DNA of 56,730 nt. It comes from Octopus bimaculoides. Taxonomy: Eukaryota. Positions 9,582 to 49,200 of the stretch are shown here, piece after piece (position 1 is the stretch's first letter; each line of letters opens with the position of its first letter). The notes beneath the pieces were generated by a model. That model made no database searches. It was not told the DNA's origin and saw only the letters and a list, made by a program, of their open reading frames with translations. The translations under genes were made by a program, and so were the position numbers. The stretch spans positions 123,402,793 through 123,459,522 of the forward strand of contig NC_068981.1 in NCBI RefSeq assembly GCF_001194135.2, read 5' to 3'.

Positions 9582-11152
9582 TTTAATTTAGTATTACGTA
9601 GAATGTTAATTAAATAATTATGAAATCGAGTCAGTATTGTCTGAAATCCGAATTATAAATTATTGAATTAGATAAAATACTCTCACATACATGTAATTTT
9701 TGGGCGATAATTGTTTTAATTGCTGCCTTCACACAACAATATCAGTTACTTCAAAACAATGTTTTATCATCTACATGAAATGATTAATAATTATTTAAAT
9801 GGCGTCATATTTCCTGCCCATAATTCTAATTTTGTCTGTTAGGATTGATAGGAATGGACGTAAAGAGATTGCTTATTTTTTAAACAAGAGTGCATTTTGC
9901 ACCAAAAGGCCAATATGAATATTTCTCTCGTGGTAACTACGCAGTAAAATGTGTTCTAACAGAACATCCACATTTAAGTAAGAATAAATATTACCTCTTG
10001 GTATGAATACAGCCACAGTTGCTAATAAATATTTTTAAACAAGATAACTGCCTAATCGCGATACCAGCGCATGTTCTGGCATTGTCAGTCTATATATCGC
10101 TGGTAGGGAGATAAGTCACTGCTATCTTTAGTTGTCGAGCTACCATCATTGACAAATCCTACGAAGGTCAAAATCATGTGATATGGTGTTTTTGGTGCTA
10201 GAGGTGGCGGGGTTGTTATTCACGAGCAACAACCTTTTCCAACTACCGCTTTTCCGAAGGTCATCAAGAAACTGTTTTCATTCCGAAATATAGAAATACA
10301 AGGTAAAACTGCAGCATTGTTCTCTTTTCTTTTGCTTTAGTAGTTTACTTTGTACCTTCTCGCATCGTTTCAGTCTTACACAACTACATTCTTTAAATCT
10401 ATACCTCAAAATGCTTCACCAAAAGTCGCTGATGTTATATATATATATACAATCAAACCTTGGGAGAGGCATTATGCCGGTAATAAACACACGCACTGTN
10501 NNNNNNNNNNNNNNNNNNNNNNNNNNNNNNNNNNNNNNNNNNNNNNNNNNNNNNNNNNNNNNNNNNNNNNNNNNNNNNNNNNNNNNNNNNNNNNNNNNNN
10601 NNNNNNNNNNNNNNNNNNNNNNNNNNNNNNNNNNNNNNNNNNNNNNNNNNNNNNNNNNNNNNNNNNNNNNNNNNNNNNNNNNNNNNNNNNNNNNNNNNNN
10701 NNNNNNNNNNNNNNNNNNNNNNNNNNNNNNNNNNNNNNNNNNNNNNNNNNNNNNNNNNNNNNNNNNNNNNNNNNNNNNNNNNNNNNNNNNNNNNNNNNNN
10801 NNNNNNNNNNNNNNNNNNNNNNNNNNNNNNNNNNNNNNNNNNNNNNNNNNNNNNNNNNNNNNNNNNNNNNNNNNNNNNNNNNNNNNNNNNNNNNNNNNNN
10901 NNNNNNNNNNNNNNNNNNNNNNNNNNNNNNNNNNNNNNNNNNNNNNNNNNNNNNNNNNNNNNNNNNNNNNNNNNNNNNNNNNNNNNNNNNNNNNNNNNNN
11001 NNNNNNNNNNNNNNNNNNNNNNNNNNNNNNNNNNNNNNNGTCTTCCACAAAGGTTAGTGACTTTCTGATAAACAATGTACAACTATTTTAAAAATAATAT
11101 ATAAAGAAATCTTTGTTAAACTTGGTAAAGTGTACCAAATAATTTTCAGGAA

Positions 11153-11188
<36 letters not shown>

Positions 11189-11259
11189 CAAACCTTGGGA
11201 GAGGCATTATGCCGGTAATAAACACACGCACTGTATATATATATAATTTTTAAAATTTA

Positions 11260-12070
11260 ATCACACACAACACACAAAACCACAATATGAAACTAACTGT
11301 TCATGCAAGGATAAAAATTTGTACCCGCTAAATGAAGCTGCATGTCCGAGACCATCATCTATGAAGCCACCGTGGACTCTATATCCACTAAGGACACAGT
11401 CTCGACGAAGAAATACGTGGGCCTTACAGAGGGTTATTTCAAGGCCAGATTCAACAATCATACCTTGAGCTTCAGGCACTGGGATAAAAGGAAAACGACC
11501 AAATTATCCAGTCATATATGGTCCTTAAAAGATAATGGTGTCAGTTACAACATCTACTGGAAGATCTTAGCCAAGTGTAAACCCTACACCAACGGCAGCA
11601 GAAAGTGCGGTCTTTGTGATATGGAAAGATGGCTCATCTGCAAAGGCAGCTTAGATCCGGCCACATGCCTAAATTCAATAACTGAACTTTTCGGATCATG
11701 TCCACATGTGGCTAAATATTTGTGGATATATATATGTAATTTTTTTGTCGAATGTGCGGGTGAGCATGTGTGTGTTTTAAGTGAGAGTGGATGAGTATAT
11801 ATACATAGGCACATGTATGTGCATGTATGGACTGGTGCGCTTACGCAAATACTATGGACATTTTTACTCTTTTACCTTTACTCCCTTCCCTCACTTAGCG
11901 GTCATTCTAATAGCTCTTTTGTCATAATAACGGTCAACCACACAGTAAATTCCCTTTGTTTACCGGTCATTTTCATAGCATTCTTCGATGGACAGATAAC
12001 TGAAGAGATGGCGACGTGGGTTTCTTCCCCGGCATCCGAAACTCGGAGTTTTATCATGGCTACCGAATAA
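11260..12070 (+). mobile_element. Penelope-like element 3' fragment: GIY-YIG endonuclease plus putative terminal repeat
   Basis: ORF 11342-11794: IIYEATV...KKYVGLTEGYFKARFNNHTLSF...TKLSSHIWSLK...WKIL...CGLC...LN...ELF..C.H, preceded by NCSCKDKNLYPLN. A hammerhead motif follows at 11995-12055. Confidence 0.9.
11995..12055 (+). ncRNA. Minimal type I hammerhead ribozyme motif (Penelope-type)
   Basis: Stem I GATAA (11995-99) pairs with TTATC (12051-55); core CTGAAGA (12000-06); stem II GATG/CATC with an extra C; GAAA (12038-41); near-palindromic stem III ACTC-G-GAGT; GUU cleavage triplet (12048-50). Confidence 0.75.
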
Positions 12071-12138
12071 TTGTGACATATTGTTTACAGATATATATAT
12101 ATATATATATANNNNNNNNNNATATATATGTATGTATG

Positions 12139-12172
<34 letters not shown>

Positions 12173-12450
12173 TGTATGTATGTATGTATGCATATGCGTG
12201 TGTGTTTGTGTGCGTATTCGGTTCAAAAAATCAATAATTTAGATATCCCTAATAAAGAACTGTCGATATAACTTGCTGTTATTATATTTCAGCCGTGAAT
12301 ACACTTATTTAATTGGGTTTGTAATTTTCCCTACATATCCCTCTGTTTTTCATCCTATTTTCAACTTTGAATGAACAGAACACTAACCAAAGGTGTTAGA
12401 GGAATGATTATTCTGCATTTGTTAAGAAATGATATATCTAGTTAAACATT

Positions 12451-28750: not shown

Positions 28751-29146
28751 TTTTACTTGTTTCAGTCTTTTGACTGCGGCCATGCTGGAGCACCGCCTTT
28801 AGTCGAAGAAATCGACCCCAGGACTTATTCTTTGGAAGCCTAGTACTTATTCTATCGGTCTCTTTTGCCGAACCACTAAGTTACGGGGACATAAACACAC
28901 CAGCATCGGTTGTCAAGCGATGTTGGGGGGACAAACACAGACATACAAACACACACACACACATACACATATATATACACATATACGACGGGCTTCTTTC
29001 AGTTTCCGTCTACCAAATCCACTCACAAGGCATTGGTCGGCCCGAGGCTATAGTAGAAGGCACTTGCCCAAGATGCCACGCAGTGGGACTGAACCCGGGA
29101 CCATGTGGTTGGTAAGCAAGCTACTTACCACACAGCCACTCCTACG
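28751..29146 (-). mobile_element. SINE family B, full length, CORE-like, with internal (CA)n/(TA)n
   Basis: Reverse complement shows A box tggctgtgtggtaag, B box ggttcagtccc and core-like catcttgggcaagtg, then a microsatellite and 3' domain. Confidence 0.92.
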
Positions 29147-29779
29147 CCCTGTGCGCGCGCGTGAATGTGTGTAAAAACTCCTTCATATACTTGACTGCTT
29201 GAATTGAATCCTCCTTGTTGAGACTTGCTATAACTCCTTCTAATACACTCTCAATTTACCTATTGATATTTGTTTAAGCAATACTTCAATTAATTCTATT
29301 TATTTCCTGTAAACTGCATAGTCAACGCTATTTCAGGTATAAATACAAGCTCTTACAAATTTAAATCAAGTGGAGGTAAATTGAAAACAATATATTAAAA
29401 GCGAAATAATTTAATGATCTTGCGAAATTTAGCAATCACAAATACAATAGTTTCGAATCAAATTGTATTAATCTCAGAATAAATTAAATAGAAGATATTT
29501 TGATAAAACTTAGTAGATGTTTTTTTGTTGTCGTTTTTGAATTGTTTGAAATAACACAAATGGTTTTTAAATCTCAATTGTGTGATTTAGGCCTACAACA
29601 TTGCACTGTATTATCTTTGACGAATGTCAGTCACAATACAGTAATAGGTTGTCTCGAGCTACAAGTTCAAGTTGTATTTTACGATTGTAATACGCGATAA
29701 CAAGCTTTACTCGTACAAAATGCCTCATTTTGAAACACTTACAAGTGACTTATCTGCTGCTGATCAAGGAGGTTTGGCA

Positions 29780-39963: not shown

Positions 39964-40194
39964 TATAAGTAATTTATTGTATTAACATGAATGCTAGAAA
40001 GCCATATCTTTAAGCTCCACCAACCAATTTCACTACTGATGGAGGAATTCAAAGCTACAAAAGCAAGAGCAATCATCACATTGCTTCTACCTGAGTATGA
40101 GGTCAGAAACAGATGATAAAGTGGGACAAAAAATTGAAACCCCCGAGACCTCTTTCGCTAAAAAAAACCGTAACAGCAAAAAGAATATCCACAT

Positions 40195-40588
40195 ACATAG
40201 GTCTGTGATTAAGAAGCTCGCTTTGCAACCACATAATTCCGGGTTCAATCCCACTACATATGTTTGATGAGTGCTTTCTTCTATAGCCTCCAACCAACGA
40301 ATACCAGTGATGAAATTTAGCTGAAAGAAGCTGCGTGGAAGCCCGTTCTATAACTATGTTTTTGTTTATATGTATGTGTGCATGTCTGTGTATGTTTTCG
40401 TGTATGTGTCTGGCCTCCCATCGCTTGACAATCGGAATTGGTTTGTTTACGTCGCCGTAACTTATCGATTTGGCAAAGGAGGCCGGTAGAATAAGTACCC
40501 GATTTAGTGTTAGACATACACAATTCAAGTCGGGGCCACAGCATTGCTGCCTCTCTAGTGACTTTAAATGGCTTAACGATAAAAGAGA
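40195..40588 (+). mobile_element. SINE family B, full length, diverged
   Basis: Head with B box gggttcaatccc, ttctatagcc, internal GT-rich tract, catcgcttgacaatcgg, gtaactta.cgatttggcaaa. Confidence 0.85.
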
Positions 40589-40789
40589 TTTATAGAGCAA
40601 TAAGCATGTGCACTTAGTATCATTTCAAAAAGAATACTCTTGTATTCTTGTATGTGAATCGTAATAGGGTACAATGTTACCACAAAAGACATTGACAATT
40701 GGTGGTGCAATTAGAGTTACTGGGCGGACGACGGTCACTCTTTTCTATCTTATAGTTCGTCATCAACAAGATCTGCTAGAAAGATACTG

Positions 40790-48599: not shown

Positions 48600-49200
48600 C
48601 GAGAGTGCGTATGCTTGTGATATGGTGAACTTATATGGAAGGGTCACTTTACTTTGTGATTGTGGTGGTGATTCTATCCTCCAAAGCAGTGATGTCTTTG
48701 TTGGTTTTTTGTTGCTGTTCCTTTTAGTACTATTGTTGCTCTTTGTGCTGTTGGGTTACTGCTATTTTTGTTGCTGATTCTGTTAATGTTGGTACTACTT
48801 TTACGTTAATGTTGCTGTTATAGAGAAAACAGTCTCGCCAAGTGGGCTTTCTTTTCTCTTCGTTTTTTTCTGTAAAAAAAAAGTCTTCGTTGCTTTGTGT
48901 CACCGTTTACATGACGCCAAGCGCTCAACCGCTACGAAGTGTTACAAACCATCTGGCTGTATGACACTGTCCAGAATGACGTCCATGCATTTTTGATTTG
49001 TTATGATCATTAAACTCCATCCCTGCGCCAGAGCCCAACCTTATTTTGCAATGTTCAGATCCTTGCGTGATAAACTAGTTTTTGTGTTGGTCTGCGTAGG
49101 CGAAACTGACAGTAGTTAGTTTCCTAGTCTAACCGACGTGTGAGCGCGCGCTGTTGATCATGTTGGTGTCGTGGTAGAAAGTGGTGCTATTTCTTTTAGT
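48600..49200 (-). mobile_element. Possible highly degenerate ORF1 relative of the 33 kb element
   Basis: C/A-rich minus strand with HFVAVERLASC echoing LHVAVEGRKPRC. Confidence 0.25.

Follow-up and report, generated by a model that had tools for sequence, protein, structure and literature searches.

A type-I hammerhead motif at the 3′ end of a truncated Hydra-clade Penelope-like element in Octopus bimaculoides

The stretch of DNA analyzed here, 56,730 nucleotides of the Octopus bimaculoides genome (contig NC_068981.1, positions 123,402,793 to 123,459,522; "the window" below), carries at 11995–12055 on its forward strand a motif that, judged by its core and its three helices, is a type-I hammerhead ribozyme. 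It is very probably (we put the probability at about 0.88) the 3′-terminal hammerhead of a Hydra-clade Penelope-like element (PLE), present in the window as a solo, 5′-truncated and non-autonomous copy inserted into a (TA)n microsatellite. The present analysis supplies the motif itself, its placement with respect to an open reading frame (ORF) and the microsatellite, the evidence that it is conserved and covaries in relatives, and the prediction that its helix III prefers dimers; for cleavage, its dependence on a dimer or on a protein helper, and a part in element RNA processing we draw on the literature.

The hammerhead motif

Read directly from the sequence, positions 11995–12055 run GATAA-CTGAAGA-GATGGCGACGTGGGTTTCTTCCCCGGCATCC-GAAA-CTCGGAG-T-T-TTATC, and the coordinates and core geometry given in the original prediction (a 5-bp stem I, CUGAAGA, GAAA and T12050 as H17) proved exact. 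All 13 hammerhead core positions are intact in this copy, and H17 is not a G. Helix I is open with five perfect pairs, helix II has nine pairs with defects, and helix III has four pairs around 1 nt (Table 1). Because H17 is T12050, the cut is predicted to fall at 12050/12051, and the earlier proposal of self-cleavage after 12050 would follow from the same assignment.

The palindrome of helix III is 4+4 with a single G at its center, and the helices of two motif copies are complementary to each other. Cofolding of the whole RNA was dominated by trivial self-complementarity, and helix III alone was used instead; in isolation its predicted energy is 0 kcal/mol as a monomer (no fold) and −9.7 kcal/mol for two copies, which would form 4+4 pairs around a G/G mismatch. 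These predictions favor the earlier suggestion that the helix works through dimers and agree with previous studies, in which the palindromic helix III of PLE hammerheads is extremely short and the ribozymes act as dimers, favored by the tandem layout of pseudo-long terminal repeats (pseudo-LTRs or pLTRs) (PMC4209133; PMC6765202).

A relaxed type-I descriptor, run over both strands of the whole window, matched this motif and nothing else. In 400 random sequences with the dinucleotide make-up of the window, the expectation for that descriptor is 0.35 matches per window, falling to 0.0075 once stem I must have 5 bp and helix III three nested pairs, and the bare core CTGANGA...GAAA, found 5 times against 3.7 expected, occurs about as often as by chance. 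Taken alone, the motif is suggestive for one window and not significant genome-wide; given its element context and its relatives, it reads as more than chance.

Table 1. Features of the element copy and of its hammerhead motif in the window
Feature	Position	Strand	Basis and remarks
5′ junction	11154–11245		(AT)n 11154–11186, 48-bp unrelated segment 11187–11234, (TA)6 11234–11245
5′-truncated Hydra-clade PLE: linker end, endonuclease, 3′ untranslated region with hammerhead, 3′ terminal segment	11246–12090	+	tblastn, DNA similarity, (TA)n bounds
Linker remnant C-S-C-KDKNL-Y-PLNEAAC (CxCX5C...C type)	11298–11345	+	three-frame translation compared with CNCRxKxxCPLxGxC of relatives
GIY-YIG-type endonuclease ORF, 152 codons	11336–11791	+	IIYEATV...YVGLT...FKARFNNH...CGLCDMERW...LN..E...CPH
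Hammerhead stem I 5′ strand, GAUAA	11995–11999	+	5/5 pairs with 12051–12055, all Watson-Crick
Core box C3–A9, CUGAAGA	12000–12006	+	read directly and in both covariance-model alignments
Helix II region, 31 nt	12007–12037	+	imperfect helix, loop UUUCUU
Core box G12–A15.1, GAAA	12038–12041	+	read directly and in both covariance-model alignments
Helix III ACUCGGAGU (ACTCGGAGT, A15.1 to U16.1)	12041–12049	+	A12041-U12049 and 3 further pairs around a single G
H17 = U (T12050)	12050	+	standard hammerhead numbering; predicted scissile bond 12050/12051
Stem I 3′ strand, UUAUC	12051–12055	+	pairs with 11995–11999
3′ terminal segment of element	12056–12090	+	cut site to microsatellite, 40 nt
(AT)n microsatellite at 3′ junction	12091–12111		followed by a 10-N gap, then (TATG)n

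The host element

The endonuclease ORF is the sole substantial clean ORF in the window and ends 204 nt upstream of the hammerhead on the same strand. A HMMER search against 1.84 billion representatives gave 4595 relatives of this ORF at E ≤ 0.001. Homology stops near codon 130, and in nearly all of the 150 relatives listed the match ends a few residues before the C-terminus of the protein; the original stop codon of the window ORF appears to have been lost. The invariant columns in the alignment of relatives are Y, G, K, R, H, F, T, L, W, CxxC, E, N, E and CxH. The window ORF has no Cys pair between GIY and YIG (IIYEATVDSISTKDTVSTKKYVGLT contains no Cys), that is, the CCHH motif is absent, and the CxxC and CxH around E and N are present as CGLC-DME...LN..E...CPH. 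Direct tool support for the predicted GIY-YIG fold is weak: the AlphaFold model (pLDDT 74.7) has the order beta-beta-alpha-alpha-beta-alpha, its best PDB fold match is the GIY-YIG nuclease T4 EndoII at an E of 0.14, and neither an NCBIfam scan nor a PDB sequence profile search gave anything significant for the ORF.

Upstream of the endonuclease the copy is short and damaged. DNA similarity to the closest relative (contig L001, below) begins at 11246. When a full-length relative (the 739-codon ORF of L015) was used as a tblastn query, only its residues 606–733 matched, at 11324–11722 and nowhere else in the window, and no reverse transcriptase (RT) was found there with this query. The linker remnant lies in a different frame from the endonuclease ORF, with a 1-nt frameshift near 11338, and its third Cys has become Tyr; the motif is intact in relatives as CNCRxxxxC.

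More complete relatives show what the copy would have belonged to. Protein P0134 has DKT, KDHK...RLINP, FDIVGFYPNI and YRDDG upstream of its endonuclease, and the 739-codon ORF L015:606-2822(-) has RWK, DKT, YRDD and the linker CNCRKKDQC, followed by an endonuclease with no Cys pair between GIY and YIG and with CNLC...E...LN...E...CRH. The published hallmarks of the Hydra clade are a C-terminal endonuclease, absence of CCHH, a CxCX5C linker, CxxC and CxH around E and N, and RWK and DKT in the RT; its elements also lack a CxC domain and an IFD and are under 3 kb in size, (TA)n is the insertion site of almost all its families, and canonical hammerheads are easily found in them (PMC8557442). Compared item by item in RT motifs, linker, endonuclease and size, the full-length relatives are, on their sequence characters, Hydra-clade PLEs, and the window ORF shares the endonuclease features.

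The copy is flanked by (TA)n at 11234–11245 and by (AT)n from 12091, and (TA)n flanks are found in relatives too. The assignment to a PLE terminal region made in the original prediction holds as regards the Hydra-clade endonuclease ORF upstream and the (AT)n 40 nt after the cut, but not as regards a repeat, since the window has a single terminal region and no terminal repeat. The 48-bp segment at 11187–11234 was considered as a PLE "tail" and set aside, as it has no similarity to the element. It is part of an exact 64-bp duplication (10436–10499 and 11171–11234) consisting of (TA)n and the 48-bp unit CAATCAAACC...CGCACTGT; one copy abuts the left edge of a 540-N gap (10500–11039) and the other lies directly upstream of the PLE fragment. 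The duplication may have arisen in assembly at the gap or may be genuine and local.

Hammerheads downstream of related endonucleases

A first protein search with the window ORF gave one match, P0001, its closest relative at 52% identity, whose contigs (L001–L004) are 1.1 kb long and end in a TA-rich stretch before the expected hammerhead region. These contigs (Logan SRR11869384-94) are themselves a decayed copy. The called protein departs from a standard-code translation of the contig, with in-frame TGA codons given as W, and the alignment of the ORF, judged by eye, shows high DNA identity to the window. A profile search then gave 435 relatives, and contigs were looked up for 10 of them and for P0002 and P0003 from the representative search. 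Nine of these 12 proteins lie on contigs with enough downstream sequence, and too little is present for P0002, P0003 and P0223 (L016–L018, L027).

Of the 31 endonuclease copies followed by 350 nt or more of sequence, that of the window among them, 29 have a type-I hammerhead downstream on the same strand, 17–210 nt away (loci of the nine related proteins and the window; Table 2). CUGANGA is invariant across all relatives. The helix III of the window, ACUCGGAGU, is identical in L019, L020 and the Exaiptasia locus L023, and other families have ACUCAGAGU or ACUCUGAGU. In most of the 29 hammerhead-bearing copies (TA)n begins 26–107 nt past the cut site, the distance in the window being 40 nt. Within families (for example L005–L013 and L022) this distance is bimodal, about 36–57 nt in most copies with a second mode at about 101–107 nt, and the two classes may be alternative 3′ ends with the "tail" present or absent. 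The full-length copy in L015 has two direct hammerheads 2431 nt apart on its flanks, an arrangement that on its sequence is the pLTR layout.

Table 2. Hammerhead sequences downstream of related endonucleases
Locus	Stem I 5′	Core	Helix II	Core	Helix III	U16.1 and H17	Stem I 3′
L005 family	TCTGT	CTGAAGA	TCGCGAAAGCGT	GAAA	CTCAGAG	TT	ACAGA
L019/L020	CTGT	CTGATGA	GTGCGTAAGCAC	GAAA	CTCGGAG	TA	ACAG
L023 (Exaiptasia diaphana, GCA_001417965.1)	CTGT	CTGATGA	GTGCGTAGCAC	GAAA	CTCGGAG	TA	ACAG
L022	TCTGT	CTGACGA	GTGCCTTCGAAC	GAAA	CTCAGAG	TA	ACAGA
L025	GTCTGT	CTGATGA	ATGCACTAGCAT	GAAA	CTCAGAG	TT	ACAGAT
L019(-)	GTTGC	CTGATGA	TTGCTCCGGAAGGAGCAT	GAAA	CTCTGAG	TA	GCAAT
L021(-)	TACCAC	CTGAAGA	TTCCTCTTGGAT	GAAA	CAGACTG	TA	GTGGTA

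Several further features of the related loci were seen in passing. Head-to-head inverted pairs are common (L005, L007–L013, L015, L022, L024 and L025), with a longer copy on one strand and a 5′-truncated copy on the other, each with its own downstream hammerhead, as in L015:606-2822(-) beside L015:3001-4266(+); an inverted arrangement is one of those described for PLEs. Type-I hammerheads of other architectures occur at L013:2598-2648(+), L015:6488-6532(+) with 6258-6214(-), L019:734-788(+), L019:1197-1249(+) and L008:1655-1715(+); among them are examples with an A-CG-U helix III and an extra U before G10.1, a palindromic CAGATCTG and one close inverted pair, and they presumably derive from other PLE families or retrozyme-like repeats. 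In L023 (Exaiptasia diaphana LJWW01000025.1, 13718–14074) a PLE endonuclease domain forms the end of an annotated "Nose resistant to fluoxetine protein 6" (P0250); the last exon of this gene model is probably a transposon fragment that the model has taken in. A scan of metagenome contigs for the 20-mer GGCATCCGAAACTCGGAGTT gave one match, which lies in apparent bacterial coding sequence and was taken as chance.

Covariation and a model built from relatives

Covariation was assessed in 10 distinct relatives, with the window excluded. In this set, which had been selected by a filter requiring stem I and helix III pairing, 94.6% of the cells of the hammerhead structure are paired and 10 of the 13 pairs have compensatory changes on both sides; none of 500 shuffles was as good, and pairing drops to 23–46% when partners are slid by 1–3 columns. 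Three of the four helix II pairs covary, although helix II was outside the selection filter. The stem covariation that the original prediction had proposed to test is seen here at the level of the clade.

A covariance model built from the relatives alone (R1, with rough calibration) was searched against both strands of the whole window. Its only good match is full-length, at 11994–12056, with 24.2 bits and an E of 1.3e-4; a second match at 49090–49114 (E 0.7) has no CUGANGA upstream and was rejected as chance. Stem I of the window is GAUAA/UUAUC and the relatives' consensus is UCUGU/ACAGA, so that four of five pairs are changed on both sides and all are still paired.

Points against the assignment

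The following points weigh against assigning the motif to the hammerhead of a Hydra-clade PLE. No same-family copy was found, and conservation is known at the level of the clade; the covariation set had passed the pairing filter mentioned above; and neither the descriptor nor R1 finds a second hammerhead on either strand of the 56.7-kb window. Helix II, besides its length, has imperfections, among them a C next to the core that is unpaired or bulged. Rfam at gathering thresholds matched no family, and no hammerhead, in the whole window, and when its Hammerhead_1 model (RF00163) was applied to 101 nt the motif scored 13.3 bits against a gathering score of 34 (E 1.2). The minimum-energy fold of the monomer is not the hammerhead (−13.0 versus −8.4 kcal/mol for the hammerhead-constrained fold) and is no better than that of shuffles (z = 0.91). 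Finally, PLE hammerheads cleave poorly in vitro and may need helpers (PMC4209133), and in the Anolis Poseidon element cleavage is not required for insertion in vitro and no RNA ends are found at the cut site (PMC11167929).

The Rfam miss reflects the model and not only the window copy, because relatives are sub-threshold too: one scores 19.6 bits, and none of seven related loci has a hammerhead at the Rfam gathering threshold. In the 101-nt search Hammerhead_1 aligned full-length at 11994–12056 (model positions 1–45) in the register originally predicted, with a 29-nt insertion in helix II. The proposed search with hammerhead models had a mixed outcome, with the same register recovered by Hammerhead_1 and the motif found by R1 but the Hammerhead_1 score below its gathering score; the classification itself, a type-I hammerhead with a short palindromic helix III, is upheld by that alignment and by relatives that share the architecture and covary. 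A non-hammerhead monomer fold is to be expected in this class and carries no information. Rfam matches at E ≤ 10 on 451 nt (mir-297, mir-3149, mir-1277 and others at 12082–12214) were discarded as low-complexity artefacts on the (TA)n/(TATG)n microsatellites.

Condition of the window copy and alternative explanations

The best fold of helix II has 4+2+3 bp with a G/G mismatch, a 4-nt ACGU bulge and one unpaired C beside GAAA; its energy is −10.3 kcal/mol, and 15% of shuffles match or beat it. Both covariance models place G12007 as G10.1 and C12037 as C11.1, and the next pair then needs C12036 to be bulged. At the thermodynamic optimum, by contrast, C12036 is the partner of G12007 and C12037 stays unpaired, in line with the imperfect helix II and unpaired C12037 noted in the original prediction. 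In relatives helix II is compact, 11–21 nt rather than 31, with 4–6 bp and a tetraloop, and abuts the core. The defects seen in the window would fit impairment and equally a family-specific long helix II; no same-family copy was retrieved for comparison with the ancestral helix II arms that had been proposed (GGAUGCCGGGG/CCCCGGCAUCC).

That the motif is hammerhead-derived but catalytically dead here, its helix II having decayed (a lost G, the G/G mismatch, the inserted ACGU) and its unpaired C disturbing the G10.1-C11.1 junction, is a serious possibility, to which we give slightly less than even odds. The ease with which shuffles match the imperfect helix II, the clean tetraloop-closed helices of relatives directly abutting the core, and the decay of the rest of the element (frameshift, Cys to Tyr, lost stop and missing RT) all point this way. 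Against it stand the 13 intact core positions, the nine pairs and −10.3 kcal/mol that helix II keeps, more than the short helices of relatives have, and the assignment of G12007 and C12037 as the 10.1-11.1 pair by both covariance models; helix II bulges also occur in accepted PLE hammerheads, for example in D. virilis (PMC4209133). As to the copy as a whole, it is a solo, 5′-truncated, RT-less and frameshifted relic without a partner hammerhead, and activity at this locus is doubtful. With a single hammerhead, the RT missing and the ORF frameshifted, the motif in the window is best seen as a fossil, and most likely is one.

The motif might also be kept mainly as a structured platform for binding or folding of the RT-endonuclease (RT-EN) protein or for the choice of template near the 3′ end, with self-cleavage incidental or rare. 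Mutants of the Anolis Poseidon hammerhead had no effect on insertion in vitro, no RNA-seq ends lie at the cut, and cleavage needed protein (PMC11167929); PLE hammerheads in general have low in vitro activity (PMC4209133). Conserved element sequence of about 40 nt past the cut site argues in the same direction. Inserted copies extend that far in divergent families, and therefore the RNA that is reverse-transcribed includes sequence 3′ of the cut and so should be uncleaved, multimeric or circularized. However, divergent families share an unvarying catalytic core together with covarying stems, as is expected when selection acts on catalysis, and fungal and plant PLE hammerheads cleave well as monomers (PMC4209133). 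We consider a mainly structural role unlikely.

Less likely again is a reading in which the family seen here is a lineage-specific variant with a greatly expanded helix II (31 versus 11–21 nt) that is still active, and in which the spacing of about 40 nt (second mode 101–107) from the cut to the 3′ end across Hydra-clade elements marks a functional link of the ribozyme to an internal start of reverse transcription (the "tail"). If such a link were true, the template for insertion would be uncleaved, multimeric or circular RNA.

The last two alternatives detach the motif from the element. It could come from a non-LTR retrozyme and not from a PLE copy. Such retrozymes are short, non-autonomous tandem repeats that bear type-I hammerheads and spread via circular RNA; those of animals have type-I hammerheads of a similar kind and have been proposed to derive from the pLTRs of PLEs (bioRxiv 10.64898/2026.07.22.740005; PMC7229834). 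The window, however, has no tandem repeat, no repeat of 11246–12090 and no second hammerhead, and the motif is contiguous with the endonuclease ORF in the standard PLE arrangement, which makes a retrozyme very improbable. Chance hammerhead-like boxes in AT-rich repeat DNA would agree with the bare core being at chance level, with the few hundred chance matches of the stem-bearing descriptor extrapolated from the random-sequence rate to a gigabase genome and with the sub-threshold Rfam score, but this least credible reading is refuted in practice by the match of the independent R1 model over the whole window (E 1.3e-4) and by the association in relatives, in that the motif has the same place, strand and (TA)n spacing as in 28 endonuclease copies of related elements and a helix III identical to that of the Exaiptasia element.

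Proposed mode of action

If the motif is, as we favor, the 3′-terminal hammerhead of a Hydra-clade PLE, an active element would carry it in both pseudo-LTRs of a tandem or partial-tandem insertion. A helix III this short is predicted not to fold by itself; two hammerheads, carried on a single long transcript or on separate ones, would therefore pair through the palindromic ACUCNGAGU into an extended helix III, and each core would then cut after H17 (here 12050), leaving a 2′,3′-cyclic phosphate and a 5′-OH. Any cut by the window motif would have to be made in trans, with RNA from other copies, and presupposes that the motif is transcribed.

Significance

The association of type-I hammerheads with PLEs is already well documented; the window motif appears to be one more instance, in a decayed copy, and leaves the known mechanism of PLE hammerheads unchanged. 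The hammerhead is recognizable by eye where the curated Rfam threshold misses it, and since Rfam misses it at the gathering score, genome annotations that use gathering scores under-report such ribozymes. A clade-specific model could be made from the comparative set of this study, which has a conserved ACUCNGAGU, covarying stems and a constant distance of about 40 nt to the (TA)n junction.

Other features of the window

The window is AT-rich, animal-type DNA with many microsatellites and assembly gaps. Two mechanically called ORFs, 11813–12070 (+) and 11960–12226 (-), of 85 and 88 aa, overlap the hammerhead and the microsatellite and show no sign of being genes. Stop-free stretches at 28774–29171 (+) and 40106–40624 (-) encode similar peptides (…GLNPGPCGW… and …GIEPGIMWLQS…), which suggests that they are copies of another interspersed repeat. 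ARAGORN found no tRNA gene in the window.

Comparison with known hammerhead systems

The Rfam Hammerhead_1 family (RF00163), which includes newt, Schistosoma and other animal satellites, shares the core and the open helix I, and its consensus shows a palindromic helix III with no loop. The window motif differs from it in its score (13.3 versus 34 bits), in the 29-nt helix II insertion and in having no conserved loop-loop tertiary contacts.

In Poseidon PAc of Anolis carolinensis a PLE hammerhead likewise lies in the pLTR, and the PAc element cuts AT-rich DNA (PMC11167929). PAc belongs to another PLE clade and its hammerhead overlaps the start of the ORF, whereas that of the window lies downstream of the ORF stop. 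The biochemical data, on protein-assisted cleavage, belong to PAc (PMC11167929).

The minimal hammerhead ribozymes (min-HHRs) of metazoan PLEs (Cervera & de la Pena 2014, PMC4209133) resemble the window motif in being type I, with a helix I of 4–5 bp, a long helix II, a location in the PLE terminal region and a palindromic 15.2–16.2 region, the active form being presumed to be a dimer. In the strict min-HHR helix III does not extend past the core, whereas the window motif has four pairs around one unpaired base, closer to the variants whose helix III is small and palindromic, those of Drosophila, rotifers and shrimps (PMC4209133). The extra nucleotide that min-HHRs have between A9 and G10.1 is absent in the window, where G12007 directly follows A12006; it is also absent in those relatives with a G-C closing pair, and three relatives have U/U flanks.

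Against the Hydra-clade relatives at the fetched loci, the window copy stands apart in its imperfect 31-nt helix II and in a stem I of entirely different sequence that is yet fully paired; it also differs from Hydra-clade PLEs in having neither an RT nor a second pLTR. With the hammerheads described for the Hydra clade by Craig et al. (2021, PMC8557442) it shares a clade-type endonuclease, insertion into (TA)n and a type-I hammerhead in the terminal region.

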